NCBI RefSeq assembly: GCF_031769215.1
Contig: NW_026781965.1
Location: forward strand, 1,488,001 to 1,552,000
Direction: 5' to 3'
DNA: 64,000 bases
Source: Ylistrum balloti
Taxonomy: Eukaryota
In this document: in pieces, positions 10,608 through 64,000 of the stretch
Position numbering within the stretch: position 1 is the first letter of the stretch
How the letters are laid out: each line of letters begins with the position of its first letter
Notes under the pieces: generated by a model
Told to the model about the DNA's origin: nothing
Database searches by the model: none
The model's input: the letters and a program-made list of their open reading frames with translations, nothing else
Made by a program: the position numbers and the translations under genes

Positions 10608-11696
10608 ATGAATGACGAAATGAAAGCAGAATTCTCAAACTTGGTGAAGTTTGTGAAGTCATCCAGTAATAGCCTAGACTTGAAGTCATCTGAGGAACAG
10701 ATCACCAAGTCTAAAAGTGAACAGTTTTTGTCTGGCAATGATGCAGTACAGATTTATAAGGATATTATATCAAGTCATTCAAGTAAATCAAAAGGCATTC
10801 AGAACAGCAGCATTGGTAAGGATCACACACCAGTAGAACAGGTACAATTAAAGCATCAGAATAGAGGACATCAATTTTCCAAACATCCTGGTAGGCCATC
10901 TACCCAATGCTGTTTAAATGTACAAACATTACTGACATGTTCCCAGAATGGAGACCTAGCAAAAGTCAAGGAATGTTTGACCAATGATGTAGACATTGAT
11001 AGTCAGGATCAATTTGGATGGACAGCTCTCATGTGTGCAGCATGTAGTGGACAGAGTTTAGTAGTAAAACATCTTCTGGCCAATGGTGCTAATAAACACC
11101 TTACTGCAACAGGCGAAAAAACAGCCGCTTCGATTGCCTCTGATGCAGGTCACTGTGATGTAATGAGATTTATATCAGAATTTGATCCAAATAAACCTGA
11201 AGTGATTGAAGAAAGAACACAGTCATCTCCCAGGGGTATACAGGTGGCACAGCCATTTTACTGTGATGTTTGTAAACAGGACATAAAAGAGACTTCACAA
11301 ATAAATCATCAAGCATCAACTGTACATTTGTTTAACATGAAAATGAAGGCAAGCCCACATAGTTTTTTAGAACATTCTAAAAACAAAGGGTATCAAATTA
11401 TGAGACGAACTGGGTGGGATGGTGAGAAAGGTTTGGGGTCAGAAGGTCAAGGGCTGAAATTCCCAATAAAGACAGTGTTAAGAAAAGACAGAGCTTGCTT
11501 AGGATCTGACACATCTAAAGAAAAAGCAAAGATTACACATTTTGGTCCTAGAGACATCAGTGCTGTGAAGAGGAATGTCAGTGTTAGTGAAAGAAAAATG
11601 TCTGCTAGAACTTTAAGCAAAAGAGCACGGAAAGCAAAGGAGAGGAAGGAAAAACAATGGGAAAAGAACTTAAGACAACAGTTTAATTTGAATTAA
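10608..11696 (+). CDS. GPANK1: G-patch domain and ankyrin repeat-containing protein 1 (single coding exon)
   Basis: Ankyrin repeats (DQFGWTALMCAACSGQSLVVKHLLANGA), C2H2 (YCDVC...HQASTVH), G-patch (NKGYQIMRRTGWDGEKGLGSEGQG); acceptor ttttcag ends 10585, first ATG at 10608. Confidence 0.92.
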   Translation: MNDEMKAEFSNLVKFVKSSSNSLDLKSSEEQITKSKSEQFLSGNDAVQIYKDIISSHSSKSKGIQNSSIGKDHTPVEQVQLKHQNRGHQFSKHPGRPSTQCCLNVQTLLTCSQNGDLAKVKECLTNDVDIDSQDQFGWTALMCAACSGQSLVVKHLLANGANKHLTATGEKTAASIASDAGHCDVMRFISEFDPNKPEVIEERTQSSPRGIQVAQPFYCDVCKQDIKETSQINHQASTVHLFNMKMKASPHSFLEHSKNKGYQIMRRTGWDGEKGLGSEGQGLKFPIKTVLRKDRACLGSDTSKEKAKITHFGPRDISAVKRNVSVSERKMSARTLSKRARKAKERKEKQWEKNLRQQFNLN

Positions 11697-13080: not shown

Positions 13081-14160
13081 CTGTAAACATCTTACTACTG
13101 ACCAGGTGTTTGTTACTACCTGTAGACATCTTACTATTGGTCAGGTGTGTGTTACTACCTGTAGACCTCTTACTATTGGTCAGGTGTGTGTTACTACCTG
13201 TAGACCTCTTACTATTGGTCAGGTGAGTGATATAACCTGTAGACCTCTTACTATTGGTCAGGTGTGTTATTACCTGTAGAACTCTTACTATTGGTCAGGT
13301 GTGTGTTATCACCTGTAAACCTCTTACTATTGGTCAGGTGTATGTTACTACCTGTAGACCTCTTACTATTGGTCAGGTGTGTGTTACTACCTGTAGACCT
13401 CTTACTATTGGTCAGGTGAGTGATATAACCTGTAGACCTCTTACTATTGGTCAGGTGTGTGTTATCACCTGTAAACCTCTTACTATTGGTCAGGTGTGTG
13501 TTACTACCTGTAGACCTCTTACTATTGGTCAGGTGTGTGTTGTTACCTGTAGACCTCTTACTATTGGTCAGGTGTGTGTTATTACCTGTAAACCTCTTAC
13601 GATTGGTCAGGTGTGTGTTACTACCTGTAGACATCTTACTATTGGTCAGGTGTGTGTTACTACCTGTAGACCTCTTACTATTGGTCAGGTGTGTGCTACT
13701 ACCTGTAGACCTCTTACTATTGGTCAGGTGTGTGTTATTACCTGTAGACATCTTACTATTGGTCAGGTGTGTGTTATTACCTGTAGACATCTTACTATTG
13801 GTCAGGTGTGTGTTACTACCTGTAGACATCTTACTATTGGTCAGGTGTGTGTTATTACCTGTAGACATCTTACTATTGGTCAGGTGTGTGTTACTACCTG
13901 TAGACATCTTACTATTGGTCAGGTGTGTGTTATTACCTGTAGACCTCTTACTATTGGTAAGGTGTGTGTTATTATCTGTAAACCTCTTACGATTGGTCAG
14001 GTGTGTGTTACTACCTGTAGACCTCTTACTATTGGTCAGGTGTGTGTTATTACCTGTAGACCTCTTACTATTGGTAAGGTGTGTGTTATTACCTGTAGAC
14101 CTCTTACTATTGGTCAGGTGAGTGTTACTACCTGCAGACCTATTGGTCAAGTGAGTGTTA
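13081..14160. repeat. 39-bp minisatellite (about 27 units)
   Basis: Unit CCTGTAGACCTCTTACTATTGGTCAGGTGTGTGTTACTA. Confidence 0.95.
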
Positions 14161-15634
14161 TGAAGCTGAAAATCTAACTGGTCATTTGACAAGGCACTTA
14201 ACCCCTATTGCTATGAATTGTACATGTATGCAACGAGCGCCCCAGTATATTGTTCACTGAGGTAGCCACCAGCTGCTAGTTATGATACCCTGATTTAAAA
14301 ATTACTCTGGCTTTTTCTTGGATGATAAAACAACAAACAAAATCAAGGAATGTCTTGTTTGTTCACTTGCTTTACGGCTTGAAGACCAGAAGAGTTTATG
14401 CCATCAAATACTATTTCGTTACTGCTAATCCTCCTAAATGGATAGTGATACAAAGAGAACCCCATTGGTGAGTAAGGAATACTTCATATTTGGTCCTTAA
14501 TGAAATTAGGACCCTTTGATTTTCAAGATGGCTGCCATGGCATCTATCTGGAAAATCTCGTTATCGCTGCACCCTCTGTATGGAAAGTCTTGTAAATAGA
14601 TATGACTTCTAGGGAGAAGAAATTTTATTGTCTACAGAAGGTCCCGACTGAAATTCTGACCCATGCCGCATGCAGTTAATTGATCTTCCTAAATCCTGTT
14701 CTCAAAACACATACTTTTCCAGAATAAAAAGCTATAGATGGAAAGCAGCTGTTTATACTTTTAGACAGCAGTATCCCTGAACAATTGCCAAACTGAATCC
14801 GCCAGAATAATGGAATACTGAAAAAAATGCCCTCGATTTGACAAGTGATTTATTCTTTGTACAATACTTAATAATAGCACCTTTCAAATATCAAAATCAA
14901 TGTGGAAAGGAAAAGCCATTTCCATTTTCATGTTAGCCATATAAATGAAGCATTTCCATGATTCACAGTTACTCTCTACATGTATACATGCAAATCACAG
15001 GTTCATGGACTTTGATGCTGACTACACAGGGATCTACGTGTTTATTTCAAGATATTGCATTTTGGTAAAACCTGCAGGAAAGAGCTCAAGACACAAAATG
15101 TCATCAGTTTATAACAATACCAAAAGTTGGACACCAGTCAGGAACTCTAGAATTTGAAAACAATTGCAATGGAACGACGCTTATCTTGGATTTTGACAGA
15201 AAATAGTTATTATCGGTCTAAATCGAGAAATAACAGGACAGATGTTTCTCAGCTTATTTGTATCCGACCCCTTTTTGCGATATTGTTCTTGAATCCTAGA
15301 ATTACAGAAAGTTGGCTATCTTTGATTCAGGCAGCTACAGTTAAATTTGTTATCGCTAAATTTACTTAGAAATACCGAGCAAATCTTTCCTAGGTTTCAT
15401 GGACATGTTCTCCAGGATAGGACGTATTTCCAAAGGTGATGATTACGCAGGATTCTTTTTGATTGAAAGCAAAAGAATATCTTGGCAGCTTAATTTATCA
15501 ATTTTCCATAATGACGAATGGATCTTTCACAAACTAAAGGGTAGCAACGGCTGACAGACAACTTTTTATGAGTTTGACAGTTAAATCTATTTTAATGTAC
15601 TGAATCGATCTTGCTTTAATTCTATGTAAATGTT

Positions 15635-35632: not shown

Positions 35633-36032
35633 GTGTACCTGTACAGGTTTGCCCATACACTACCGGTAAGAAAGGCAAAATTATTTACGATAAGGATCTC
35701 GCGAAAAGATTATGGGCAAATATTCACCCTCCTGATTTTCAAGAGTTTTTGAATCAAAGCGGACGAAATTTTGATATCAGTGAAATTGTCTACCACCCTG
35801 GAGAACTTGAAGTTAACATCATTTTCAACATACGTGACAAGGAGGCATGGTATACATTCAAAACTCACTTCCACAACGACTTATGCAAAAATATAAATGC
35901 ATATCTAGACAAAAACAAAAGAAAAATTCTTGCAACATTCACTGGTTGGTTTAAAGATAATTCAAACGTGCAGTACAAAATCAACATGTCTGATAAACAG
36001 AAGACAACAAAACTAGCTGAACGATTCTTTGG
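35633..36032 (+). CDS. RNF213: RNF213-like N-terminal exon, unidentified domain
   Basis: tttcatttcaag acceptor phase 1, 400 bp open (VPVQVCPYTTGKKGK...LAERFFG), donor GTAAGT phase 2. Confidence 0.65.
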
Positions 36033-38339: not shown

Positions 38340-38983
38340 CCATGGTTCCTTATAAAACTTTGCGTTCAGTTGATTTTATTCGACTGTAAAGGATGTTGGG
38401 GTCAATTTCAAAGGTAACACCATTAGTAACGGGTATGGCCACCGTTTGCGAAGTAAACAGCATTGCAGCATCGTCGCATGAAACTTGTAAACCGGTGGAT
38501 AATTAGAGGAGAGATGTTGTTCCATTCAGCGATCAAGGCTTGGGCCAGCTCCTGCAAGTTTGACGGCTGATTTTGACGTTCTCTCAGGCGTCGCCCAAGA
38601 ACGTCCCAGACATGCTCCATCAGTGACAAATCAGGTGATTTAGATGGCCAATCTAACACCTGTACGTTATTCTGCTGCAAGAAAATTCTGCTGACGCGAT
38701 TGGTGTGCGCTGGTGCGTCATCCTGTTGAAAAATGGCGCCAACGCCATGGCGTCTTAAGAATGGCAGAACCACTGGTCTTAAAATTTCGTCCCGATATCG
38801 AATGCCGCTTAAATTGCCATTTAACACAACAAGCCTGGCAGGAGTCCCCCCACAAATGCCACCCCAAACCATTACACTTCCGCCGCCAAAGCGGTCCCGT
38901 TCTGCGACGCAGCAGCGGCGAGACTCCCCAGCCTGGATCATGCCTACAGCCCTTTCTCTCTGTACTTCTGACGGCTGGGGCAT
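38340..38983 (-). mobile_element. internally deleted Tc1 element (186-aa fused ORF, 38423-38983)
   Basis: MPQPSEVQRERAVGMIQAGESRR fused to CCVAERDRFGGGSVMVWGGI...QDDAPAH...SPDLSLMEHVW; one TIR-like end, cttataaaactttgcgttcag, near 38349-38369. Confidence 0.88.
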
Positions 38984-39285
38984 AATGATAACATTGATAG
39001 ATAGCAAGATTCGGTGATTTCTAAGTCCTAAGGATCTAAGGAACAGTTGTCAGTTTGAATCTTTATGAAATTCAAGCGAAGATACAAGTTAGTCGCAGAA
39101 AACCTCGTGCAGCTCTTTCGCTAATACAGACTTTCACGCTTGAATGATTTTGGTAACCCCCTTGGATTTTGTAATGTAAAACATTACCATTTTCTAATAT
39201 CGCACAAACGTCATTTTGTTTTCACTCATTTACAGGTATTTGCCAAGGAAACATGTTAACCTTTCTTTTTTTGTTGAGTATATAG

Positions 39286-44500: not shown

Positions 44501-44696
44501 CTCTATTGAGCAATCGTATCTCAAAAAGTACTTTACAGAGATACTTAATATTTGAGGTATACAGTTTTTTGATACCCATGCATACTTACTCCAAAACTTA
44601 TGAAATATGAGGTTGGGCCAAAAATGGTCCTTATCCTATGTTGTCCTTGATGATAGAATACACTTGTAGTCAAATAATAAATTAATTTCGTTTCAG

Positions 44697-46438
44697 GATC
44701 TTTTGTTTTCAGTATTCATCCCTGAAACAAAAACAGATGCGGTGGTTGATGTATTTATGGAAACCACCAGTGAAGGCTTACGCAATGTCCAACTTCATCG
44801 ATTCCCAAAGTCCTATATTTGGCGTGCAGACGTTAATGTTCCAATTCATCGACAAGAATTATTATTTCGTTTCAAAATCAAAAGACAGAGAGAAAGGGTG
44901 ACTGGAATCCTCATATCTACAGTTAATATAGAATGTGTAACAGATGAAACAATTTATTTTCGAAGAAATGCAAACGATTTGAGAAGACGCCAGGATATTT
45001 TGCTATGTGATGATATTTACTGGAAACAGCGGGGGTATGCCGAAATAAGTGCATCAATAATTTTGTCGGTAGGGGAAATCTCTCTAAAACAAGCTATCAT
45101 TGACCTTGAAAACTATCAAGAACAGATGTTTGTTCATTTTCAATACCTGGATTTCAAACACATATTAGACATGATGGAAGACCAGTTAGGCCACTTATCT
45201 TTCAAAAGAGAACGTGCATTATGTTTTTTAGTTTTCTTATCTAACATACCAAGAACGTCACATCGGTTCCCAATGCATATGGTTCCAGATATCGTTAATG
45301 CAGTAGATTGTTCTCTATCACATGACCTCACAAGGTCATGTATAGATAAAGTTTCATCTGCTTTATATTTTTTATACTCAGAAGCTCCACATCCGAAAAG
45401 TTTTGTGAGATTTGTGGATATTGCATTTCCGATGTTACCATCGTCCTTGTTGATCAAAGTATACACCTGCAACTGGGACAGAGCGAAATGTCCATTTTCA
45501 GTCGATGATGAAGAATACACTGCTTCGGTATTAAACACTTTCCAGAAGGAATCTTCAGACATAACTGAAAATCAAAAGCTTTTAGAAATCATTTTAACAA
45601 ATATAACATTGAAGTCTCTTGTTCAATGTACAGACTCTCTGCTTACGAAGAATGGGAGAATGAATGATATGGCAAAACTTTTATTTTCCAACCTCCTAAT
45701 TAAAACGAAAGTAGAGATAAGCAAATCCAGTAAAATGGCCACCGACCAATTTCAGAGCTTACTGAATATCTGGTTGCTCACGAGCTCATTCTCTAAAGAT
45801 CCAGAATTCACTGAAGTGGTTTCACTGTTCGAGAGAAGTATTTTAAGTGTGATTAAATCAATGGAAACGAACGATCAGTGTAAAAACTGGGAAGAGCTTT
45901 TAAATATCTGCACAAGTGAGGATGCCGTACTGTTTCAAAATTCCGAAATAAAAGTTACTCTCATGGAAACTATCTGCACCGCGCGAAATTTGAAAATATG
46001 TCCATCATTAGTAAGATTATTGGACACTGACAAATTTTGCCATCTAGACATTGAAGTAGGGAAATCAATATTGGCAACATGGTTTGACAACATTATCTCC
46101 CACCATTGTAAATACCAACACAAGGTAACCTCTCAGGATTTGTGTCGTGTGTATAGACAACTTGGAAACATTTCTCGAACAAAATATCTCCAAGCAAATC
46201 AAACATTGGTGTTACCATTGTCTAAAAAGATATACAACATACTTAGGAAAAGAACAATGAAAGAAAACATTCAGACGACTGCTGACATTGAACAGATGGA
46301 TGATCCTTTCGCTGAGAATCAGTTCGCTGCTCATATGAAGACTTTAATCCACGATGGACATGACACGAGGGGCTACTCCGTCAATGAGTTTATCATGGAC
46401 ATCAGTGGCAGAACAACTCCGATGTTAATAAACTCTAG
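44697..46438 (+). CDS. RNF213: RNF213-like exon (N-arm/stalk region)
   Basis: tttcgtttcag acceptor phase 0, 1742 bp open, donor GTTAGT phase 2 joins AG|A (R) to the next exon. Confidence 0.85.
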
Positions 46439-47661
46439 GTTAGTATAATTCATCAAAGCCTATTATCAACAGAATGTTTGAGCTGATAACCGGTAGGTTC
46501 ACAATGCAGTTAATAATTACAATTTACACTCATTAATTATATATGGAAAGTCAAACCAGCAACTCTCCCTCACTAAGATCAAATTGATCGCTATAGAATG
46601 GTCTAAACCTTCATACTTTAGACTGAACTACTGGCATCTAAGCATCACAAACTGAAATCGATTTCCTTATAGCCCTATGTCAAATAGTTTAACCAAAAAA
46701 TAAATACGTATGAAATTGGCCAGAAATGTTTAAATGATGATTAGTTAATTATAAGGCAACTGTGATTAGTTTTCTTTCTTGTGCTTGATTTTGGTGACAG
46801 TGAAGAAATTGCGTATGTATATCAATGTGTTTCAATGTCACGCAACTCACTGTTTTGTGTCGATGAATGACTAATGATGTTCAAACGCTGCCATTGACCT
46901 GAAATAATGAGATGGTCTTACAAAAATCCCTAAATGACTAATGTCCATCCTGCTTGGTGAGAGTAAGTAACTATTTTATGTAAACAAACCTTGAGCATAC
47001 AACAGTACTTTTAAGGATTTTGCTATATAACATGTCTAAATTCTAAGAAATTCACAGCTCATCATTTAGACAAGAACTATCGAAGTATACGTTTAATGAT
47101 TTACAAAAAGATAATTAATTCCAGCTTCACTATGTTATACTTTTTAAACAAGATTTAATACATAATTCAAACTTGTCTCTTTGAACATATGTAAGATCGC
47201 GTCCATTTTTAAGCAAGATAAATGTTAAGAAAAAGATGTCTTTGTAGTTCTCAATGGATTAAATAAGTTTACAATATCAACAAAGGGAGGACTATTTACG
47301 TAACGACAAACGAAAAAGCACAAGGATAATATATGTCCAGATATTTCACATGGATAAGAGGCTTCATTTTTATCAACAAAACCCGCAATATAAACTTTGG
47401 ATAAAATAAAGGTAATGGTATACCCTCGAAAAGAGTATTAGTTTAGTGACAAGAAAACTTCACAATAGATTTTCTATTAAGAACGTCATTACTAACTATA
47501 TACAAAGCCCTAACAACGTGACACTAACACTCAGATAATCTATGTACTTTAAGCTGTAATACTGTAAGGTATCTTGGTAACTAAGTTTTCTTTTTATAAT
47601 ACATTCACACATCAAAGATAATCCTTTTTATCTCAATGATCTGTCCTTGTTTTTCCCCCAG

Positions 47662-50600
47662 AGTAACCTTGGGATTGTGTAGAAGTCTAATGAAACTGTC
47701 TGGTGTAACCCACAACTCACCGGATGAAGACACTGTTATGGTCTTGCTGAAGTGTTCTACACTTTGGAAAGCTTTATTCGATGCCAATGGAACAAAGAAG
47801 GAACAACTCGAGCAGGACACGCTCTTTATACATGCACAAATGGCACTGCGCAAAGTAGTGAACAGCATAAGAGACGAAACGGTCAGCTGTAGACTGCTTA
47901 GAACTTCAAACATAGTGGCACAGATGAAAACGCTTTTACCTGGTAATACATATAGCCGTTTTGAAGTGCAAACGATTCTTTTAAAATTGAAGACGATTGA
48001 TGAGTCAATAGCATCTACGATAAAAAGAATGAACGAAACAAAAAAATCACTTGAAGTGGTTTGCAAGCGTACTGGAGGATTGTTTAAATCAAAAATCGAA
48101 ACGGTCAAATCTCGTATTCAGTCAGATATTGACTATATAACAGATGGTAGTATGAAATTCGCAGAAATTGAAAAATTTACCAAATGGGTAACAGATACAT
48201 ATGAAGATTTCACAACCATTAATTTCCTCCTGGAATCTCGCATGTATTGGAATGCTGTCGGCAATTTGATGGGTTCAAACTACGACGAATGGTGCGATGT
48301 ATTGATTGAGAATGACAGAGATGACATGCAGCCAGAGGATGCTGTTGAAGACATTAGATGGTTATTTTCTTCTCATTCTCTGTCTTGTGAAGATGACAAA
48401 GACATTTCTGTAATAGTTTTTCGTTCATTTGTCAGCTCTCTTAGCGGACCTGTGCTGGAGATTTACAAGAAATGGTGGGAGAACATTTCGAAACTCGAGG
48501 AAACAAGCATTTCAGACATTGCTAATTATTTTCAGTATAAGTGCAATATCCAAGAAGAAATCGATATCGCAAAGCGCGCTCATATAACCTTAAAATCGGA
48601 GATGAAAAGAGCATTATTAAACTTTGAAGAATATCCTCACTATGAAAGTAGGTTTCATGCAATTAAAAATGCTTTAAAAGCGTTTAACTTGGATTCAGCG
48701 ACTGATGTGAAATTTCATCGCGCAATTTGTGCATTTGATACGCTGTTTGAACAGAATACTTGGCTTTTGTTGAGAGATGTTGACGAAGCAGTACAAATTA
48801 TGAAGGACGCAACACAAGATATTGATGAAGATCTGATCTTGATTATAAGCGAACTTGTACAGTCATCTGCATTGGTAGAATTTATTCGTGAAGTTGTAAA
48901 TGAGGATCTACGCAATCTAATCGATGCCGTAGAGGAACATTCGGAGCAATTTGTTTGTGAATTGACTGTGTCCGATTTGATCGATATCAAACAATTCTTA
49001 CTCCCGGTATTGAAAAGCAACCTTGATCAAAACATAAGAGCATTTATTGATGCATTTACAAAAAGTTATGCAAATTGCCAACCAAAACAGATACCAGCAA
49101 AAATTCGAGCATGCATGGATAATGTCCATAGTTTAAAGTCGTTATACTATAATGTTGCAAACAAAGAGGAAAATACAAAAGAGATCATCAAAATGATAAA
49201 TAACGGCGGTGTTTTTCGAATCTATGTAAACAATCAAGTATGCGAGCTCAGCGTTGAGTGCAAACGAGACAAAAAGGTATACCAATACAGCCACTCCCGT
49301 CTGAGTGATCTACGGAGCCGTGCGTTACTAATCATGAGTACTGAAGAAAAAAAACATTCTCCTCGAAAGGCACACAGGTCTAAACTGGCAGAACACCTAA
49401 CACATTTTTCCTCACGTGTTGATATTTTGTTTGCAATAGTAGACAAGATTGACTCACTGATGGCACTCGGGCATTTTGTTTGGTGTACTAGTGCAACGCA
49501 GATGATCAAACCACATGACGCAGAAGGTATTCTAAATAAACTGTCGAACGAACTCTCAGAATGGAAATCTCTACTTGAAAATTGTAGAGAACAATTTTTC
49601 TTGATGAATTATATATCCTCAGAGCACCTTCCTCTAGTGCAATCATATCTGGAGCGAGGAGATAACGAAACTACGGTTCTAAATATTCTAAGATACGTAA
49701 ATCCAAATGTAAATCCTTCACATCTTGCTAGTCTCTATGAAAAGTACCATTCAATGACCATGGAAGACAATATAGAAAACAAACTGTATAAAACAGGAAA
49801 TTGTGTTCAGGATGTTTTTGGGATGATTCCTCCAATAAGAAGAGCCTTTCCAGGAACGGAGCGGAGAAATGTGAAGTTAAGAGACACAGTGTTAGAAGGC
49901 AAGCTTCATATTTCTGTTTTAGAGGAAGGCAGTCGGTCAGTACTACATACTGTTCTAGCGCTGTATCAAAATACAACAGGTCTTCTACCAGAATCGAATG
50001 AGCTATTATTTTGTACAAAGCAAACGACTCAAGATGAATTATGCCTGTTAGTCAAAAGATGTCGAGGTGTTACAAACACTCAGTCGCAGAAAAGATTATT
50101 TTGCATAGTAAATGCAGAACTACTTCCATACGAGCTTCAATTCAAACTTACCAATTTGCTCCAGTACCTTCCCAGGGAAGAAAATTTTCTCTTGGCAATT
50201 GTTTGTACTGGAAGAGACCAGTGCACTTTTCTAGAATGGTTCCATGATAACATTTTTGGGATAAGACCCTTAACGGAAATACAATTACGGAATTGTTTAG
50301 AAGCAAAATGGCCTAATGTTGTTACTCTTACATCTGACATACCAGGACTTGGAAAAACTGAAACTATATTTGATATTGCATCAGAGCACGACAAAAGCGT
50401 AAAAACTCTTCATTTGAGTGGCTTGTTTGACAGAAATAAATTTATAAGACAACTCCTCGATTTGAAATTGAGACCACATCATTTATTGCACATTGATATT
50501 GGTATGACAAATGATCCAACGGCTTTGGATTTGTTCCTATTTCAGCTTATTATTACAGGGTTTGTCGCTTCAGGAACAAGTGCCTATGCTATCCCGACAA

Positions 50601-53600
50601 ACTTTGTCTGTATAGAAGTTGCAAACTCAATCAACAATATTTTAATCGATAGTTTGCCGACAGCAGTTCATTTCAAACGCATAGATCTGCAGTGGAAAGA
50701 ATATTCAAATATGAAAATTCCCTCCGATATAAACAGTCCTTTGCAAGTAGTGTGCCAATACTTGCACTATTTGGACACTTCCAAAATAAACAACACGGAC
50801 ATATATTTCCACGGCAGCAGTAAGGTGCTTCCTTTGAAAAAAAAGCTATGCATTCAATTGCTTCAAAAATATTTCTCATCGGCAAGCGATATGTCATTCA
50901 CATTAGTTGAAATTTTCATCAAAGTTCTTGCCGAACAACTGAAAAAGATGTCTGCAAGTATATTCTTTCGACAATCGAGCATCAGAGCAATACTTGGAGA
51001 CAACGTTGACAGCACCTTGAAGTCAAGTCTAGTCCGAATAATGGTTGACGTTTCAAAGGAATTTGCAACCAGATCGATAGGTACCTGTCGTTCTTCACAG
51101 GCTGCCGTCGTCTTAAATACTCGGATTGAAAGTGAAAATACTGAGCAATTAAGCACTGCATCAATCCTTGCACAGAGAGTTCAGGGAATGATTCAATGGG
51201 AAGAGAGCAATCACCTTGTTGTAATATTCCACCATGATATGCAAACGGTGTCAGCTTTGTTCAGGAAACTATCTCAAGTACCAGAAAACGTAAAAAACCT
51301 GTTTCAAAGTCAGATGAAGAAAACATTTGATAATCTAGAAAAGGCGTCAGTTGAGGACCTTCAGCGTATTATTGTGAGATTTACGTGCACAGGTTCTCCT
51401 AGAGAGGACATGCTTACCTCATTGGCATCATCGTACGCGTTGACACCTGATAATCTTCTGAAAATGATCTTGGTAGTTATGAGACTGCAATCAAATGTTC
51501 CAGTGGTAATTATGGGTGAAACAGGATGTGGAAAGACGTCGCTAGTCAGATATCTAGCGACCATTACTGGAATAGAATTGGATATTTTAAGCATTCATGC
51601 TGGAACATCAGAGGAGGAAATTGTCTGTAAAATTGACAGCATTCAAAAAGTAGCACATGCTAATTTATCTGCTCATAGATGGGTGTTTCTGGACGAAATA
51701 AACACATGTGATCACTTAGGTGTTATTACAGATTTACTATGCCACCATCGGTATCATGGGAAATCTCTGTCGCCTAATGTATCAGTAGTAGCAGCATGCA
51801 ATCCATATCGCCTAAGACATGCAGATTCAGTTTATACTGAAGGATTACAGGGGAAACTAAAGGAAGATGAGCTTTCCAGATTGGTGTACAGAGTTCACCC
51901 TCTTCCGGAATCACTTATAGATTTTGTTTGGGATTATGGAAGATTAAGTGATACAGATGAACAAAGATACATCAAAACAATGGTCGGAAATGTACTGAAA
52001 CCACAATTATTCTCAACCATATTTTCTGAATTATTGGGTATGTCCCAGAAGTTTACTAGGGATTTGGAAGATAAAGACTACTCAGTAAGCCTTCGGGATG
52101 TCGACAGGACAATACGACTTGTCAAATGGTTCACTGACATCTTATCAAGAAAGGATGTTCACTGCAAAGATATCGTAAAGAAAGCAATTATTTTGGCAAT
52201 GGCAATGTCTTATCAAAGCAGGATATGTAGCGTAACTAAACGGAAAGAATATGTGCGTGATATGGCTTCTATCTTTTTTAAGCACAATGTGGACGTTGAT
52301 GAAACTCACATCATGCAGATAATAACAACTGAGCAAAACGACATACTCGACAGAATGGAGTTACCGGATGGAATAGCACGAAATACAGCACTACGGGAAA
52401 ATGTATTTGTGATATTTGTTAGCATTTTAAACAGAATCCCGGTGTTTATAGTTGGTAAACCAGGCTGCAGCAAATCGCTATCCATGCAACTTATCCGTAG
52501 TAACTTGCGCGGAAAAGATTCGAAAAATGACTTCTTTAAGATGTTACCACAGCTGTTTTGCGTATCATTTCAAGGCTCGGAATCGTCCACATCTGATGGA
52601 ATTGTTAAAGTGTTTGAAAAGGCAAAAAGATATCAGGAGCGAAACAAACATGACAATGTGTTGTCAGTTGTCATTCTAGATGAAATAGGTCTTGCGGAAA
52701 TATCAAGGTTTAATCCTTTGAAAGTACTTCATGGCTTACTAGAGCCTGGCGGTAAAAGGAACCCAGATGTTGCGGTTGTTGGAATATCGAATTGGGCTCT
52801 AGACGCTGCTAAAATGAATCGTGCATTACAACTCTCCAGACCTGAAATGGATGCTGAAGAACTATATGAAACAGCTAAATCAATCAGCCAATCATTGACA
52901 AAAGTGACACAAAAAACAAAATTTCCCTGGAACATCGATAAAGCCAATGTTTTACAAGACGATAGCATGCTCAAAGCTTTGGCAACGGCTTTCAATGAAT
53001 ACAATCGTAATCAGAGATTTAAGAATTTCCATGGCTTGAGAGACTACTACGCCCTTATCAAATATATCAGTAGATGCACTTCCAATTCTGAAGCAATGGA
53101 AAGCGAAGAAAGAGACATTATTATCCACGGTCTCTTGAGAAACTTCAGTGGTCTTCCGTCTGAAACGATGAGTATGATGGTTACATTTCAGAAACATCTT
53201 GAGACAAGTTTAAGTGTCAAAATGCCTGTTTTTGAACTTATAAGAGCCAACATTCAGGACTCATCTTGTCGCAACCTAATGCTTATCACACAAGGAGATG
53301 CGGTTATAGAAAAGGTTGGTAAACTCTTGAAAGACTGTGGAAAGGAATATGTGGTCATGTTTGGAAGCCAGTTTGAAGACGACTTAACAGACGATTATAA
53401 TTATCGCATCTTGAGCAGAATCATTCTTTGCATGGAACAAGGAATGGTGTTGATACTGAAAGACCTAGAGAGTATCTACGGTAGTTTATATGATATGCTG
53501 AATCAAAACTACACTATTGTTGGGAAGAAGAAAAACTGCAGAGTAGCACTTGGTCCTTACAGCAACCCTATGTGTCAGGTAAATGATGCTTTTAAGTGCA

Positions 53601-56600
53601 TAGTACTTGTGGAAGAGACGAATCTTGACTATTCCGATCCACCATTTCTGAACAGGTTTGAAAAGCAACAATTTCGTTTTCTTGACTTACTTTCATCAGA
53701 GGATGAAAAAATCATATCAGGTTTAAAAGCCACACTGCAGGCTTTTGTTGAAATCCCTGATTATCCATTCTCTGTTTCAAAAGCTTTGCCGATTCATGAA
53801 ATTGATGTGTTGTTATCACTTCTTCTCAGTGTCAAAGAAACAACGGAAACGGCTGATATGGAAGACTTAATCAGGATATGTTTGAGTCGCATTATGCCAT
53901 TGGTTTTTCCGGAAGCAATCATAAGATCAAGTCGGTCAACACTCTCGCGTGAACAACCAACATTAGTGCAAACATTGACAGAGGAATTTTTCAGTCTTCC
54001 TTTACATGAAGGTCTGGAAGCGTTCTTGACAAGTCAACATACATTAGATGAAATGCCTTCTATGGGATTTACGCAGCCAATTCTATGTGAGGAACTGTGT
54101 GTTATATTTACTCATAGCAGTACCCATATAAACATCTATAATCTTTTGAAAAATCATAGATTGTCCGTTGAAAAAATTGGAGCATTCAAGTCGGAAAAAG
54201 ATTTAACAAAAGCGATAGATAACTTCTTTGAAAGTGAACATGAATATTTATTTCTCCAATTTGATTCTAGGTATGATATGCATCATTTTCTTCTCACAAA
54301 AATGACCGTTGAACAAAGAAAAAAAGAAAGCGTTAGCTCTTCTGCACAAGGAGCAAAAAAGTATGTGTACTTAACGGTTCATCTAAGTATTGGTGATCAC
54401 ACAGATTCGTCAATTTCACAAATTCATTTCATGCCCGGTTGGAGCTTTGTAACTCTTGACACACTTGAGAAGCCGTATGTCAGTATTCTCGGACTAAGAG
54501 ATCGATTACTGACAGACATAATCTCAGAAATGCGTCCTTTAGATTCTATCATTAAAGAACAGTTACTATGGGCATTCACGCGCATACAGTACAGTCATGA
54601 AGACCGCCATTCAGACGAATTAGAGCAAGGCATTAAACGGCTGAAAACGTCCAGTCTTCTCTTAAAAATGATCGACGATTTTGTTATTTCACAAGTAGAA
54701 AATCTAGTAATGGATGATATGAACTGGAAATTCAACATCGCATGTGATGAACACGCTTTAATCAGCGGAGGTACATATATTGAAGCTATCAAAAATCATA
54801 TCCTTGACATAATAAAAAAGCCAGTAGCTGTTTTTGTTTTCAAGATGGAACAAGAGGGATGTTTGGAGTCTTTGTTTATTGAAGATCACAAAAGCAGTCA
54901 TCGGCGGAAAACATGGGAGGATCTTGCTCGCAAGAATGAGTTTTGTAATTTTGAAAATATTCCATTTCCAACTGGACCAGAGTGTTACAGCTGTACCACG
55001 CCTGCTTTTGTGCGAATTGTACCATTCAGTGACCACATAATGACACAAATAGAAGATTTCAAGGAAGATTTCCTAAATACTCTTAGAAAAGTAAAAGCAC
55101 AGAGCACAGAGTATGGCGACGACGAAGAACATCCCATTGAAATCGTACATGCTGTGTTGGAAGGATACAAGGATATCATTACCTCAAATACACAGTTGGA
55201 GGAAATGGATCAGGCTGGATATGAAGAAATGATTGCAGATTATTTCCATGACTATTGCAATTATATAACTTCATTACATTCATCAAAAGACAAACGGGCA
55301 GCAGAATCTTTACGATGGGCGATTGACAACATTACATCATGGAAAGCAGAAACATTTACAGATTCTGTCATCATGTTGCATGCAATATACTGGACTTACA
55401 TGGATAAATTAGACTGCATAGTGAAAATTTTTGATTTGGCTTGCACGTTCGGGTCTGAAGAATTATTTCTCCAGGATATCATTTCTAAACTTTATTCGGA
55501 CAAAACAAAGTTGGGCGCGTTGGATCAGAAAAATTTTGAGATGAATATGGCATGTAACACAGAGGAGGAGGATGGAAGCGAAACTCCAGTAGAAAACTTT
55601 GACGATTCAATATGTGAGACTGAGGTAGATGTGATAAACGATTTGGTTATACTTGTAGGCAACATGTTACTGCCTACAACGGACAATGTTGAAGCTATTG
55701 GTTTTGAAAGATGGCAGCACAGTGTAAGCCGTGCATTGCCATTGATTGGCCAGATATCGACTTACATGCCAATAAACCATAAGCTACGATTCTGCTCAGA
55801 TATAGCTTCGATATTGATTGTTCCATACAACCTCGAGACAAATCTGCTGACTGCCATTGGAGATAGCTTATGCTTATTAGAATTAAATGATAAAGAAATC
55901 TTTTCTGAGTTATTCAACTTCCTAAAGACATTAAAAGACAATTACAAGATTCCTTCTGTAAAGCTAAAAAAGATCATATCATTGTATCTACATCGATGTA
56001 TCCATACCCAACCCGAAAATGATGACATATTCATCTGGTTTTTTGAATGGATCGAACATGAAGATGCATGCAATCCAACATCAAGCTTTCTGTTACCAGA
56101 TTTCCATTATATTGGATCCATACTACAGCTTGCAATTGCGTCGCAGCAAGCAGAAGATGAAGATATATTTCCATCTATTCTTGATGGAAATGAAATCTGG
56201 AAAAACAATGAATTTTGCAAAACACTTCAGCATTGCCTGAGTACAATTTCTCACGCAGGAAAACTATATGAAGGGTTAAGCGTTCTCTTAGTGCAAATTA
56301 TTCAAAAGCATGTTTTCGAAGAAGACGAATACAACCCTGAATGTGATGAAGTTTTAGAAAAGACATTGATCAGTGATGAAGGCAACACCCCATTGGAGCA
56401 AATATCTAGTGCCGCTTTAATTCGTCATACAATTAATCGCTCAGCACATATGACAATGCAAAGTGATTTGAATGTAGATGATAATCGGTTATTTCTACAT
56501 AGTTTGAATGCTTTATTAAAGCCGCCAAGTGAATGTGGCGATCAATTGAGATACGGGCCTTTGCTTTATTTCCTGAGAAAATTGAAGCAACACTGTGGAC

Positions 56601-59221
56601 TGAGAAATGTTCAAAAAATTGCTGAACGCTTAGCTCTTTCAATGTCAACAGTTAAACACATTGAATGGTCACAAGATCTTACAGTTGTTTGCTTAGAACT
56701 CAATCCACTGGAATTCTATTGTTCCAAGGAATCATCGGAAACAGTCGATAATGCATGTTCCAAGTGGTTTGATTCCACAGAACATCTGAAAACATTTTGT
56801 GATCAAATCGTAACAGATGTTGACAAGCTAATTCATATCGAAAGAATCATAACAGCAATATTTCTAAAGAGGACATGTGTGACCATACCTGAGTCTACAA
56901 AACAATTTGTGATGGCGGTATTTAAGATGTTGCCAGTCAACAGCATCCCAAAGGAACATGCCGGAGTGTTGCCATATCTATTCGGAAAAGTTGATTTTAA
57001 CCATTCCTTGTTCCATCTTAACACAGAAGTTCAGGAACCCGATCCACAAATAGTCTCTGTTTTGTTGCACCTAATGTGTATAACAACATTGTACGGAAGG
57101 CCAGGGTACATTTTCTATGACTGCATTCACAATCCTGGACAGTTTAACTGTCACCCAGCACAGACTCTAAGAGAACATATGACACGTGATGTTAAGAAAG
57201 CAGTGTCTTGCATGGAATGTCCATGTAGAGTAATCTTTGTTTCACCTACTGACATATGTCCATCATGTAAACAGAAACAAATTTCTACTGAAATCAAAAC
57301 TTTTGCAGCTTTGCTAAGTGGAAATAATGTAGATACCATGGTAGAACATGTAATATATCGATTGTTTGTCAATGCATGTCTGATATGTTCACTTGCTTTG
57401 CGACTTTGCAATGAGTCTACGATTGCACCAATAGTCAATGCAAGTGACGATAAAGCAAATGTGTCAAGTGTTATTCAAGATCTTGTCTTAGCAGATTGGG
57501 AAAGGTTACGAAAGCAGTTGAATCTAAGTCATTCAGATCTAAGTTGTCTCCTAAACTTATTACTTTGTACCAACAAGGATACATTTCTCAAACTACGGAA
57601 TCCAAGTGACGTTAACTTTGACAAAGAATTTCAACTGTTCGCGAAGTGTTGTAATGATTTTGTGAAGAATCGACAAGAAATGTTAAACAAACATCGTAGA
57701 GAATTCGCTTCACGAAGAGGTCTCTCGAACACGATGGAACGTATTTTAGAGGTCGATAATGAGTACTCATTATATGGAACACCCGACAAAGCATCGATTG
57801 AAAATCTCACAACTGAACTCTCATTTCATTGCCAATCTGAAAGTTCATTTTTGCGAGTGGTTTTAAATAACCAGCATATTCTTTCACTGCCAAGATACAT
57901 AACAGATATTTTGAGATGGCATTTAGCAGCGGTGAATTGTATGAGTTACAAAGTCAGAAAATTTGAATGTGCAGAACAAACCATCGCTAAATTTTTAACC
58001 CTGATCGAAGAAAATGACTCAAAGACAAAATTAAAGCAAAAATTCGGCAATTTTAAACATGCATGGAATAAACTAAATGAAAACAGACATCTGTTATTAG
58101 AAATGTTTCCTTCACTGCCTGAGATGGAATTGATGACAATGAATTCGTGTGCTTCAAATTGCTTGATTATTGACAAAAACTCAGTAATTTACCAAGTTTT
58201 GGAAGCTCTCGTAGCTATACAGAACAACATTCTCATTGAAGCAATGGAGATTTCTCGATCAAATGACTGTCCAGATTTCAACCTCCTGTCCTGTGGTCCT
58301 GATGCAGCTGTGGTACGGTGTGTTTCCATTCACAACATAACACTGTCAGATGTTATATCATTTAACTGGACCGACGATTATTTGCGGTTTTCACAATGTA
58401 AACCAAATTCTGAAAATGGCAGGAGCATATTGTACGACTTCCACAAGATAGAAATGGAAGTTGCTCATGAGCTTGTCTCCAGAAAATCTTTTATCACAAA
58501 TACTGAGACGATTCCTTTGATTGTGTTTGCTGATGAACTGTTCAGGAACAGCGTTACTCTTCTTCATCGAATCGCTAGTAAAATAACTCCACAGGTGCCC
58601 CTAACAATGGAACTCAGAAGAGGTGTTGAAAATAAAAGCGAGCGGAACTCTTCTTACACGATTCAGCTTCTTTCACAGATTGGAATCGTGCTATCACTAT
58701 TAAACAAAACAGGAGGTGATTCCCAGATTTCTCTTGTTGACTATCTTATGGCATGGAAAGATTACATTGACATGAAAACATTAAGGAGTCTTTTACCTGA
58801 GCCAGAAAACTCATTTAAACTTTGTCATATCGTTGCAATGTATGAATGCATGGAATTGAAAAGTGGAGAAGAAATTAGTGATACCCTTGGTGTAAGGTTC
58901 CGTTCTCATGTGTCTGATGAAATTCGGCAACATTTCAAAATAGCACAGCAACACCAATCGTCCCTGGCGATAGTGGACAAAGCACTCAAGTTATTTGTAC
59001 ATAGGAACTTTTCAACCCATGACATCAATGTTGAACTGCTGAACCGACCTTTGGTCAAATCTTTGATGGACCCAATCTACTGGAGAGTGGACATTGATGT
59101 TAGGAATGGGTCCATAGATGAGGATAGCAAGGAAGCAGTTGCCTTGCGGCATGTGATCTCGCTAGAGTGTCTTGGAGAACACTTATACGAAATGATTGAA
59201 CTCGTCAAACAAGCAATCAAA
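47662..59221 (+). CDS. RNF213: RNF213/mysterin-like AAA+ ATPase, giant exon of 11560 bp
   Basis: SDIPGLGKT; MGETGCGKT (51512) with FLDEIN; VGKPGCSKS (52454) with ILDEIG; LKVLHGLLEP; GISNWALDAAKMNR; FGSQFEDD; LYDMLNQNY; PFLNRFEKQ. Acceptor ttttcccccag, donor AAA|GTAAGT. Confidence 0.95.
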
Positions 59222-59447
59222 GTAAGTGTAAGGAACCATCATTGATCGGTTGATGAGAAATGAAAAGTGTTTCGGTCTAGCATTATTATATACTATGATC
59301 TTTTATAAGTAATATTTGTTAATGTAAGCCCAGATTCTCCTAAACATATACCGACGTAAGATGGAATGTTTATATTTTCCATTTTTATCAAAATCATTAT
59401 CTTTTTTAATTGGCAGTTTTCTCAGAAATGCATTTGCTGTACTTTAG

Positions 59448-59540
59448 GATATTGAATCAGTAACCAGAACGACAACATATGAATTTCTTTTCTTTTGTCG
59501 AAAATCTGGTTCACATAGGAAGAACAGGCAAACGAGATGA
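59448..59540 (+). CDS. RNF213: RNF213-like candidate terminal exon
   Basis: ctgtactttag acceptor, DIESVTRTTTYEFLFFCRKSGSHRKNRQTR*; other acceptors are possible. Confidence 0.35.
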   Translation, partial: DIESVTRTTTYEFLFFCRKSGSHRKNRQTR

Positions 59541-59755
59541 GAATATCGTCAGCGTCTGTGGTATTCAAAGAAAAGATGGCAAATCGTTCACAATCTATGC
59601 GAAAACGGAAGAAAATAGCGTCCAAACTCCTTGGAAAGACATAAGGTATGATATATTCAAAGAGTCGGGATAAATGTTATGCTTTATGATACAATCGTAT
59701 ATGAAAGTAATTTGATTTTTTATTTTCAATGTTTTATATTTTATCCTTTTTTCTC

Positions 59756-59778: not shown

Positions 59779-60699
59779 ATGTATCCATCTGTAACATTTA
59801 AATGCATCTCTTTCACATAGATTGATATCATATCCTCTGTTATATTACTACAGGATCCTGTAGGACCAAACATGGTACTTATGAAGTGGATGGATTGAGT
59901 ATTCATTAAGGGAAAACGAGTATTCCATGTACTGCAAATTGTAATTATTTCCCTTTTGGAACTATAATATTGCACTTGATCATGGTGGCGCTTATTTATG
60001 TTTTATAAAGCTGTGTTCTATAACACATATCATGGGCGTGCCAATTTATCATATATATGGTAAGCTATAATTAGAGATGTTTCTTGCAAGGTCATATTCT
60101 TTGAAGATTATCGTATGTTTTTATGATAATGTTGTATCTATGTTTTGCTTGGTTTGTATATTGTATATTTATTATAAATGTATATACTTTCCTTTGTCAG
60201 AAAGATTATTGTTTTTCTAAGTTTATATGTTTATGTACCTTACTTCGACAATATGATAACCAATTCAGAACAATATTCAGTTTGCGGGAAGCTGTGTTAT
60301 GGAAACAGCGCTTTTCTAAGATATGATAACTTGTGTCTATTTCATTTTGTTGTGTTGAATACCCTACGCTGTATAAGAAATCAGATTTTAATGTGTAGAG
60401 ATTTTGTATATAATACAACCATGAATCTTGATAGATGTGGCCTAATGTTATCTAATTAGGAGAGATTGTCAGACATTCATTTCGGAATCTTTCATGCATT
60501 GTGATTTTTACACAATGAAAATTATGCACATATGGTATCACAAAATTCTGATGTTATTATGGTAGTCATGCTAGTAAATAATATTTTGACTTACTGTAGG
60601 AAATGTTATATTGTATATAGGACAAGTATCGATGTCTCCAATATTATGGCTACATAATAATTTTAAATGATAACATGATTCAAAAGACATTAGATGTAT

Positions 60700-62524
60700 T
60701 TTTTTGCTCAATACCCATGTTTTAAAAATAGATGGTGATGTTTACATTATCATTTATTTTGACCAATTACCATGTTTGAAAAGATATGGTGAGTTTCACT
60801 GCAGATAAATATAATAATGTTTCGAATGTTAATTTAATTAGCAACGCTGTATTTCAGGTGTCAGGTTTGAATAGATGGTGAACTGTTTATCTTACATGAT
60901 GCAACTTTATGCAACATTTAACAATACCCTTGCTTGAAAAGATATGGTGAGATTTGTTGCAGTTAATTATCATGGTTTTTTAATTTTCAAAATCAATTTA
61001 ATTAGTTATTGTATTTTTTAGCTGCCAAGTTTGAAAACGCTTGGCGATATGTTTATTTTTACATGATACAACTTCTTGCAACATTTATTTTGATCAATAC
61101 CCATGTTTGAAAAGATATGGTGAGATTTGTTGCAGTTAATTATCATGGTTTTTTTTTAATTTTTAGAATTAATTCAATTAATATATGTGTATTTCAGTTT
61201 TAAGGTTTAAATAGACATGAAAATATATTTATTTTTACATGATACAACTTCTTGCAACATTTATTTTGATCAATACCCATGTTTGAAAAGATATGGTGAG
61301 ATTTGTTGCAGTTAATTATCATGTTTTTTTAATTTTCAAAATTAATTTAATTAATATATGTGCATTTCAGTTTCAAGGTTTAAATAAACATGAAAATATT
61401 TATCTTTACATGATACAACTTCTTGCAACATTTATTTTGATCAATACCCATGTTTGAAAAGACATGGTGAGATTTGTTGCAGTTAATTATCATGGTTTTT
61501 TTTAATTCTCAAAGTCAATTTAATTAATAAATGCTGATTTCAGTTTCAAGGTTTAAATAGACATGAAAATATTTATTTTTACATGATACAACTTCTTGCA
61601 ACATTTATTTTGATCAATACCCATGTTTGAAAAGATATGGTGAGATTTGTTGCAGTAAATTATCATGGTTTTTTAATTTTCAAAATTAATTTAATTCATA
61701 TATGTGTATTTCAGTTTCAAGGTTTAAATAGACATGAAAATATATTTATTTTTACATGATACAACTTCTTGCAACATTTATTTTGATCAATACCCATGTT
61801 TGAAAAGATATGGTGAGATTTGTTGCAGTTAATTATCATGTTTTTTTTTTAATTTTTAGAATTAATTTAATTAATATATGTGTATATCAGTTTCAAGGTT
61901 TAAATAGACATGAAAATATATTTATTTTTACATGATACAACTTCTTGCAACATTTATTTTGATCAATACCCATGTTTGAAAAGATATGGTGAGATTTGTT
62001 GCAGTTAATTATCATGGTTTTTTTTAATTCTCAAAGTCAATTTAATTAATAAATGTTGATTTCAGTTGCCAGGTTTAAATAGACATGAAAATATTTATCT
62101 TTACATGATACAACTTCTTGCAACATTTATTTTGATCAATACCCATGTTTGAAAAGATATGGTGAGATTTGTTGCAGTAAATTATCATGTTTTGTTTTTA
62201 AATTTTCAAAATTACTTTAATTAATAGGTGTGTATTCAGTTGCCAGGTTTAAATAGACGTGAATATATATTTATTTTTACATGATACAACTTCTTGCAAC
62301 ATTTATTTTGATCAATACCCATGTTTGAAAAGATATGGTGAGATTTGTTGCAGTTAATTATCATGTTTTTTTTAGTTTTTAGAATTAATTTAATTAATAT
62401 ATGTGTATTTCAGTTTCAAGGTTTAAATAGACATGAAAATATATTTATTTTTACATGATACAACTTCTTGCAACATTTATTTTGATCAATACCCATGTTT
62501 GAAAAGATATGGTGAGATTTGTTA
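60700..62524. repeat. satellite of about 174 bp (about 9 good units plus a degenerate start)
   Basis: caataccc recurs at 60922, 61095, 61271, 61442, 61615, 61788, 61964, 62137, 62313 and 62487. Confidence 0.95.
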
Positions 62525-62769
62525 CACTTTGTACTTTTTGTGTTTCTAAGGTAACTTGTAGTAAACAATTGTTTACCAACAGCCAGGTCTGAAAGGACAT
62601 GGTTATATATTATATCACGAAGTGATATATGATAAGAGAACATGTACTTTGATCTGTACCCATATTGTGGTATTTGTTGCTCTTGATATTTTTTGCATGT
62701 AAATGCCTTACATAGGAACATTGGGATGCATGTTTATACAAATCCTACTGCTGAAAATTGTAAATATCT

Positions 62770-64000
62770 TACGCATTGTGAATCAATGTTATGTATATAG
62801 ATGAAATATGAGGAATACGTAGCAGCATTGTTACTCAATGTTATGTATATAGACGAAATATGGTGAATACTTAGGATCTTTGTGAATCAATGTTATGTAA
62901 AATATGGTGAATACTTAGGAGCTTTGTTACTCAATGTTATGTATATAGACGAAATATGGTGAATACTTAGGATCTTTGTGAATCAATGTTATGTATATAG
63001 ATGAAATATGATGAATACATAGAAACATTGTGAATCAATGTTGTGTACATAGATGAAATATGATGAATATGTAGGAGCATTGTGAATCAATGTTGTGTAT
63101 ATAGATAAAATATGATGAATATGTAGGAGCATTGTGAATCAATGTTGTGTTTACAGATGAGATATGATGAATACGTAGCAGCATTTTTACGCAATGTTAT
63201 GTATATAGACGAAATATGATGAATTCGTAGGAACATTGTGAATCAATGTTGTGTATATAGATGAAATATGATGAATCCGTAGGAACATTGTGAATCAATG
63301 TTGTGTTTACAGATGAGATATGATGAATACGTAGCAGCATTATGAATCAATGTTATGTATATAGACGAAATATGGTGAATACTTAGGATCTTTGTGAATC
63401 AATGTTATGTAAAATATGGTGAATACTTAGGAGCTTTGTTACTCAATGTTATGTATATAGACGAAATATGGTGAATACTTAGGATCTTTGTGAATCAATG
63501 TTATGTATATAGATGAAATATGATGAATACATAGAAACATTGTGAATCAATGTTGTGTACATAGATGAAATATGATGAATATGTAGGAGCATTGTGAATC
63601 AATGTTGTGTATATAGATAAAATATGATGAATATGTAGGAGCATTGTGAATCAATGTTGTGTTTACAGATGAGATATGATGAATACGTAGCAGCATTTTT
63701 ACGCAATGTTATGTATATAGACGAAATATGATGAATTCGTAGGAACATTGTGAATCAATGTTGTGTATATAGATGAAATATGATGAATCCGTAGGAACAT
63801 TGTGAATCAATGTTGTGTTTACAGATGAGATATGATGAATACGTAGCAGCATTATGAATCAATGTTATGTATATAGACGAAATATGGTGAATACTTAGGA
63901 TCTTTGTAAATCAATGTTATGTATATAGATGAAATATGGTGAATACTTGGAAGCATTGTGAATCAATGTTGTGTATATAGATGAAATATGATGAATACGG
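62770..64000. repeat. 52-bp minisatellite with 512-bp higher-order repeat; runs off window
   Basis: Unit TGTGAATCAATGTTGTGTATATAGATGAAATATGATGAATCCGTAGGAACAT; a 44-bp variant recurs at 62891 and 63403. Confidence 0.95.

Follow-up and report, generated by a model that had tools for sequence, protein, structure and literature searches.

Can a giant invertebrate protein built like the antimicrobial ubiquitin ligase RNF213 still transfer ubiquitin by the route known from mammals? The question is raised by a gene of the scallop Ylistrum balloti that lies in a stretch of 64,000 nucleotides (RefSeq assembly GCF_031769215.1, contig NW_026781965.1, positions 1,488,001 to 1,552,000 of the forward strand), called the window in the following and used for all coordinates. 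RNF213 ranks among the central antimicrobial E3 ligases of mammals; no site in it other than the RZ finger has been shown to be required for ubiquitin transfer. Within this finger, a catalytic dyad formed by human C4516 and H4537 (mouse C4462 and H4483) carries ubiquitin from the E2 to the substrate, while the RING is dispensable (PMC11549300, PMC12075652). 'RNF213' genes are numerous in bivalves and other invertebrates, and their expansion or induction has been read as a capacity to ubiquitylate lipopolysaccharide (LPS; PMC9993606, PMC7430831, bioRxiv 10.1101/2023.05.29.542712), and members of the clade described below are treated as E3 ligases in the invertebrate papers. An original prediction, made from the letters of the window alone, had proposed an RNF213 homolog with an intact ATPase, without a RING and with an RZ finger that keeps its zinc scaffold and has lost its catalytic loop. 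Here we find that both residues of the dyad are absent from the scallop finger, and that the missing nucleophile is a trait of an old metazoan paralog clade rather than of this single gene.

An RNF213-type AAA protein with a putative zinc cluster at the position of the RZ finger

The gene occupies 35635-59644 on the plus strand, and most of its product is encoded by one main exon of 3862 codons (47636..59221, +) within an open reading frame (ORF) of 3869 codons (47636-59245, residue numbers of which are used throughout). This exon holds the rest of the N-terminal arm, a six-AAA core, the hinge, E3-back, E3-shell, a remnant of the RZ finger and the C-terminal domain (CTD). A phmmer search of the PDB with the ORF returned RNF213 over the AAA core with an E of 2.7e-127 (query residues 1041-2145 on human 2209-3355), which together with the C-terminal profile (E 5.6e-68) and the fold matches given below bears out the proposed homology and makes the protein, as judged from its sequence, a member of the RNF213 (mysterin) family with a dynein-like six-AAA core. 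The claim that AAA3 and AAA4 are intact stands as well, as both Walker A/B pairs line up with their human counterparts residue by residue. In AAA3 these are Walker A GETGCGKT (residues 1294-1301, 51515..51538, +; human GETGCGKT) and Walker B WVFLDE (51680-51697, +; human FFDE), in AAA4 Walker A GKPGCSKS (residues 1607-1614, 52454..52477, +; human GKPGSSKS) and Walker B VVILDE (52667-52684, +; human VVLDE).

Further downstream in the same ORF, 57200-57290 (+) translates to AVSCMECPCRVIFVSPTDICPSCKQKQIST. A scan of the main exon for paired cysteines or histidines ([CH]-x1-4-[CH]...[CH]-x1-4-[CH] with at least three cysteines) retrieved a single compact cluster at residues 3192-3211, and no 45-residue window of this exon is rich in cysteine and histidine. 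The four cysteines of the CxC-x10-CxxC motif, C3195, C3197, C3208 and C3211 (57218..57268, +), are 100 %, 92 %, 100 % and 97 % conserved in the nucleophile-less clade described below and belong to the small number of nearly invariant columns in the C-terminal region as a whole. As four cysteines are conserved at 92-100 % in 81 relatives, the cluster is no chance match.

Its relation to the RZ finger became visible only with a broad profile. Neither the C-terminal 1719 residues as a single phmmer query nor a profile of seven C-terminal sequences matched anything in the PDB. An exhaustive hidden Markov model (HMM) search with the seven-sequence profile found 578 relatives, from which an alignment of 75 sequences over the last 1093 residues of the main exon (A2) was built. 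The A2 profile matches mouse RNF213 with an E of 5.6e-68 (profile positions 26-1054 on chain residues 3577-4613) and places the scallop cluster columns on the mouse RZ finger, YTCPRGHPCSVGECGRPMQESTCLDCGLPVGGLNH. By HMM and MAFFT alignment, C3195, C3197, C3208 and C3211 occupy the four metal-ligand positions of the RZ finger (human C4505, H4509, C4525 and C4528). The cluster lies 708 residues from the C-terminus, compared to 701-704 for the RZ finger in bird, fish and rabbit.

The surroundings agree with this placement. An AlphaFold2 model of the C-terminal region (m14a65f6ef370) reached a mean predicted local distance difference test (pLDDT) score of 87.1, about 92 at the cluster, and a predicted template modelling (pTM) score of 0.82. 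Foldseek retrieved RNF213 entries alone with this model (E 7e-18 to 3e-14; next match 0.03), and VIA-align superimposed its residues 1-861 on the human E3 module (4055-4979) with a Z of 19.4 over 722 residues. In addition, 15-19 relatives of fungal, algal and Hydra types carry intermediate forms of the finger, CxCG[FY]xYx[IV]G[NED]CG-x7-CPxC-x3-IGGxxH, which unite the invertebrate CxCG start with the vertebrate nucleophile loop and base and thus bridge the scallop motif to CPNGH...GECG...CxxC...GGxxH of vertebrates. Judged by alignment and model, the cluster is homologous to the RZ finger by position and keeps the putative zinc ligands, in line with the prediction that it would be the only zinc-like cluster and the remnant of this finger. 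That it would instead be an unrelated zinc ribbon lying near the RZ position by chance, for which the missing Pfam RZ match on the cluster and the failure of the single-sequence and seven-sequence searches to reach RNF213 could be quoted, is close to refuted and deserves hardly any weight, given the 75-sequence profile, the intermediates joining a CxCG start to GNCG...IGGxxH, the equal distance to the C-terminus and the flanking folds that match RNF213.

Loss of the catalytic dyad

In the family alignment, catalytic relatives read YxC-xC/NG-[FYH]xYx[IV]G[NE]CGxxxxxxx-CPxC-xxxIGGxxH, and the scallop reads EC-PC-RVIFVSPT-DI-CPSC-KQKQISTE. The G-x-C-G nucleophile corresponding to human C4516 is absent, the scallop loop RVIFVSPTDI being free of cysteine and about eight residues shorter. 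The general-base histidine of IGGxxH, human H4537, is gone too, a loss beyond the one noticed originally: CPSC is followed by KQKQISTE, with neither GG nor histidine. Of the earlier proposal of a deleted catalytic loop, the disappearance of the nucleophile loop is thus upheld by the alignment; the idea of a deletion specific to this gene is not, since the trait is shared by an old metazoan paralog clade. The Pfam family PF20173 (ZnF_RZ-type, gathering threshold 27 bits), searched at E up to 10, had no match in the scallop, Mizuhopecten, amphioxus and another mollusc, and recognised two catalytic relatives used as positive controls, P0205 and P0239, with 82.9 and 64.2 bits (1e-23 and 8e-18).

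One cysteine next to the cluster, C3192 in 'SCMEC', was considered as a displaced nucleophile and rejected, because it precedes zinc ligand 1 and is replaced by valine in Argopecten. The catalytic position is therefore not filled by this alternative cysteine.

Phylogenetic distribution

The 120 relatives closest to the scallop protein by AAA core include bivalves, gastropods, amphioxus and two fungi. None of them (0/120) matched a strict regular expression for the catalytic RZ pattern; this expression and the one used for the RING were validated on bird, fish and rabbit RNF213, in which they detect both RZ finger and RING. In most of the 120, CxCG-x12-20-CPxC stands equally far from the C-terminus. 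Trees were calculated from the C-terminal region after removal of the RZ columns, by FastTree and, with vertebrates and Hydra added, by IQ-TREE under LG+G4. The scallop protein falls into one clade of 58 rows (FastTree 98, IQ-TREE SH-aLRT 95), all 58 of which lack the nucleophile, so that the paralog survey extends the loss well beyond Ylistrum. Named members of this clade are molluscs, Branchiostoma, the starfish Asterias, the nemertean Lineus and the octocoral Dendronephthya. Most members of the clade retain a long loop that merely lacks the cysteine, and the scallop lineage has shortened it further. Catalytic forms stand outside the clade, in Glomeromycota and Endogone fungi, the green alga Cymbomonas and a clade of Hydra and vertebrates (support 100), from which the scallop protein groups apart. 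Four more rows outside the clade also lack the nucleophile cysteine, therefore the trait needs at least four changes on the tree.

As fungi and a green alga have the RZ dyad too, the simplest reading of these sequences is that it is ancestral and that a paralog lineage lost it before the cnidarian/bilaterian split. The scallop gene would then, again on the simplest reading, belong to this dyad-less paralog lineage and not be an ortholog of vertebrate RNF213.

It is worth mentioning that arbuscular-mycorrhizal and Endogone fungi encode RNF213-like giants themselves (P0007 from Diversispora, P0008 from Entrophospora, P0160, P0176, P0178 and P0239). The AAA cores of P0007 and P0008 are among the closest to that of the scallop by HMM score (42 % identity); in the motif scan these two fell outside both RZ patterns, and P0160, P0176, P0178 and P0239 have catalytic-type RZ fingers. 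P0007 is named a CBM20 domain-containing protein by one source, and vertebrate RNF213 has a CBM20 domain as well.

Absence of a RING

The scallop protein also does without a RING, as had been proposed. The main exon, both located upstream exons and the last exon with its 41 residues are free of C3HC4 patterns, and no Pfam RING family matches the main exon or the two upstream exons, the second of which is free of zinc families altogether. A RING hidden in a downstream exon, which had been named as a possible objection, is not there either: the last exon encodes a 41-residue basic tail with zero cysteines.

For the region in which vertebrates carry their RING, a further alignment was made of the 550 residues preceding the A2 region (A3), the profile of which matches human RNF213 3632-3881 with an E of 4e-11. 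After rabbit, bird and fish RNF213 had been added with MAFFT --add, about 70 residues holding the vertebrate RING were found inserted between positions 2769 and 2770 of the ORF (55940..55945, +), where scallops, amphioxus, fungi, the alga and Hydra have a short turn. The AlphaFold2 model of E3-back and E3-shell (m05f3e3ceea01, pLDDT 87.7) is helical throughout except for an acidic disordered loop (ORF residues ~2639-2665, 55550..55630, +; pLDDT below 50 at model residues 371-394) and shows no zinc-type or beta RING-like element. VIA superimposed model residues 187-548 on human 3701-4122 (Z 10.7), the human chain being about 60 residues longer. Of the 120 proteins closest to the scallop by AAA core, not one has a RING (0/120), nor do Hydra and fungi have it; therefore it defines vertebrate RNF213 and not the family. 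On this sampling, sequences and models make the RING a vertebrate gain, not a scallop loss.

Possible function and alternatives

From the missing dyad we infer, as the original prediction did with its E3-dead decoy, that the scallop protein would be inactive as an E3 ligase. The known RZ route of ubiquitin transfer would be unavailable to it, the dyad being gone; the retained zinc knuckle, held on flexible linkers, would have a structural or binding role rather than a chemical one; and the ATPase engine of AAA3 and AAA4 would drive sensing, scaffolding or coat formation. Mammalian RNF213 offers the analogy, in that RZ mutants still coat Toxoplasma vacuoles and the ATPase is needed for this (PMC11549300). 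Following it, we consider it probable, by a modest distance, that the scallop protein acts without RZ transthiolation as an ATP-regulated sensor, scaffold or coat-former of cell-autonomous immunity.

Several observations weigh against this assignment. Ratios of nonsynonymous to synonymous substitution rates (dN/dS), obtained by the Nei-Gojobori method over 3850 codons aligned with the Mizuhopecten locus (L001), come to 0.125 in the AAA core against 0.14 in the CTD, and E3 scaffold and CTD are constrained as strongly as the AAA core, which a pure non-ligase would not obviously need. A replacement nucleophile could be provided by C3509, which is a cysteine in 73 % of the nucleophile-less clade compared to 16 % of the catalytic relatives. 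The trees are rooted on a single green alga and rest on simple models (LG+G4, FastTree), and several branches were flagged for their length. Finally, contigs of the only public run found for the species, which holds genomic DNA, differ from the window at 16 coding positions over the final 2.8 kb of the main exon (56400-59221), 11 of them nonsynonymous and five synonymous; this amino-acid excess, from a small sample, hints at relaxed or diversifying evolution within the species.

The alternative that survives best is a cryptic ligase using other chemistry, for instance with C3509 as nucleophile or with an E2~Ub bound by the CTD that discharges onto the substrate as with RING-type E3s. Such a ligase would account for the retention of E3-back, E3-shell and CTD, fold and sequence of which are under purifying selection (dN/dS 0.14-0.23), and for the uneven distribution of C3509, which lies at 58160-58162 (model residue 740) directly before an invariant IQN motif. 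No other cysteine exceeds 73 % conservation in the clade, which counts against the cryptic ligase. C3509 as the replacement nucleophile is a weak lead from the alignment. Discharge from a bound E2 would be favoured by a tyrosine equivalent to mouse Y5106, an E2 contact, which is present in the two other scallops, Mizuhopecten and Argopecten, as well as in fungi and the alga; in the Ylistrum protein, however, the aligned site (ORF residues ~3797-3808, ~59024-59059) holds a serine (LVKSLMD), the phenylalanine and tryptophan of the vertebrate E2 patch are unconserved outside vertebrates, and the working E2 in mammals is UBE2L3, which needs a cysteine acceptor (PMC12075652). Outside vertebrates, sequences aligned with the CTD motif of vertebrates (mouse F5093, W5097, Y5106, E5108) can be interpreted only in part, and no conclusion was drawn from them. 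Altogether, we regard a cryptic ligase as rather unlikely, albeit as an alternative to be taken seriously.

Clearly less probable is a partner-dependent ligase, in which the scallop protein would act as ATP sensor and bind the substrate, and transfer would be left to another E3, for example a catalytic paralog. In its favour, the family is much expanded in molluscs (1528 matches at E below 1e-20); yet no catalytic-type RZ of a mollusc was found among the 120 relatives closest by AAA core or the 36 matches to a catalytic-type query, leaving this arrangement improbable.

Nor do the data suit a decaying pseudogene or relic copy. The nonsynonymous excess within the species and the fast RZ-flanking segments (dN/dS 0.52 over 77 codons including the core) would fit decay, but a frame of 3862 codons has stayed open at a genomic G+C of 37 %, orthologs are intact in three scallop genera, and the same-species contigs, which cover 56400-59700 and run across the last intron, differ from the window by substitutions only, with no indels. 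Between 56836 and 57693 there are zero differences, in a run that may be the sample behind the window assembly. The main exon as a whole has a dN/dS of 0.17 at a dS of about 1.0 against Mizuhopecten and the gene is therefore under purifying selection; on this value the pseudogene is rejected and close to refuted, with next to no probability left to it. The within-species nonsynonymous excess contrasts with this between-species ratio of 0.17. The RZ core, with 0.15 (0.154) over its 26 codons, is likewise under purifying selection as estimated from the aligned codons, and its faster flanks would fit the flexible tethers described for the mammalian RZ finger (PMC11549300).

The sensor, scaffold or coat-former without RZ transthiolation hence remains our preferred assignment for the scallop protein. 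For the whole clade a broader proposal can be made from the sequences, namely that these pan-metazoan RNF213-like proteins, which are greatly multiplied in bivalves and lack the known ubiquitin-transfer site, work by a mechanism undescribed for the family: they would be either ATP-driven pathogen or lipid sensors or coat-formers with the former RZ knuckle repurposed for binding, or ligases with a new active site. We put this forward tentatively, as a possibility that falls somewhat short of an even chance.

Gene structure and neighbouring sequences

The window is free of N runs. The gene model was obtained by tblastn with the two closest proteins, both pectinid like the nearest homologs in general: P0001 from Mizuhopecten yessoensis (4722 aa, 71 % identity over the main exon, corresponding to P0001 residues 800-4681) and P0002 from Argopecten irradians (4736 aa, 65 % identity). 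All searches were run with the individual exons, each taken separately. An N-terminal coding exon lies at 35635..36030 (+), with approximate boundaries from P0001 residues 18-147 and P0002; the second located coding exon, at 44688..46442 (+), encodes about 585 residues of the N-terminal arm (P0001 residues 234-816; ORF 44703-46448). One or more exons for about 85 residues between these two were not located by tblastn with P0001 and P0002. The main exon ends at the splice donor AAAG/GTAAGT (59221/59222), and the last exon, assigned through P0001 residues 4682-4722 and an acceptor site, encodes the basic tail and the stop (59519..59644, +; coding 59519-59641).

The window holds further features besides this gene. 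A 341-aa transposase ORF of the Tc1/mariner type (HTH_Tnp_Tc3_2 and DDE_3) lies at 6564-7589 (-), and a DDE_3 transposase fragment of 194 aa at 38423-39007 (-), inside the long intron of the RNF213-like gene between the exons ending at 36030 and starting at 44688. A 375-aa ORF at 10569-11696 (+) combines ankyrin repeats with a following G-patch domain (Pfam E 5e-12 and 1e-11). The long ORFs at 3454-4689 (+) and 13251-14192 (both strands), the latter in a region that is open on both strands over 13.2-14.2 kb, gave Pfam matches that are repeat-like, sub-threshold or implausible (Lysostaphin_N, PsbU, Pcf11 RFEG repeat); instead of genes, they probably represent low-complexity or tandem-repeat DNA. 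Directly downstream of the RNF213-like gene, at 60001-64000, G+C falls to 0.26-0.28 and GC skew climbs to +0.15 to +0.36, which probably marks simple-sequence or satellite DNA.

Significance

Previous work has established the RZ dyad, the Pfam RZ family and the fact that the RING is dispensable. In the papers searched in full text we found no description of a metazoan-wide, RING-less RNF213-like clade that has the RZ zinc core but lacks its catalytic residues. If the dyad is indeed missing clade-wide, reading invertebrate 'RNF213' genes as LPS-ubiquitylating is unsafe. The clade would also provide a natural separation-of-function series with a live ATPase, an intact E3 scaffold and a dead RZ finger, from which roles of RNF213-type proteins beyond ubiquitylation and roles of the zinc knuckle beyond chemistry could be learned. 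Finally, the comparison would make the RZ dyad the ancestral feature and the RING one that was added in vertebrates.

Comparison with known systems

Vertebrate RNF213/mysterin (human Q63HN8; structures 6tax, 7oik, 8s24 and 9jwg) and the scallop protein have in common the dynein-like six-AAA core with the active-site motifs of AAA3 and AAA4, the folds of E3-back, E3-shell and CTD, an overall length of about 4700 residues and a finger of the zinc-binding type about 700 residues from the C-terminus. They differ in the RING insertion of about 70 residues, which the scallop lacks, in the nucleophile loop (C4516) and the general base (H4537, IGGxxH), present in vertebrates and both missing in the scallop, and in the second zinc ligand, which is a histidine at +4 in vertebrates and a cysteine at +2 in the scallop, as in fungal and algal forms. 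In the tree, vertebrate RNF213 falls into a different, paralogous clade.

A second group for comparison is formed by the catalytic-type relatives from Hydra, Glomeromycota/Mucoromycota fungi and the alga Cymbomonas (for instance P0272, P0160, P0178, P0239, P0235), which have no RING, share the C-terminal architecture of the scallop protein and, except for Hydra (CPRGH), start their finger with CxCG and have CPxC as its second knuckle. Unlike the scallop, they keep G[NE]CG and, except for Cymbomonas, IGGxxH, and the Hydra relative has a precomputed PF20173 match where the scallop has none.

ZNFX1, the other founding member of Pfam PF20173, can be compared by description. Its RZ finger belongs to the same class of small zinc-stabilised finger folds from which the scallop knuckle would stem, but ZNFX1 is an SF1 helicase that keeps the catalytic dyad, whereas the scallop protein is an AAA protein without it.

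A more general parallel is found among pseudoenzymes, for example pseudokinases or E2 variants without catalytic activity (UEVs), which like the scallop RZ remnant retain fold and structural metal site under selection after the loss of catalytic residues. Unlike those, the scallop protein pairs its presumably dead module with a second and apparently live engine, the ATPase.

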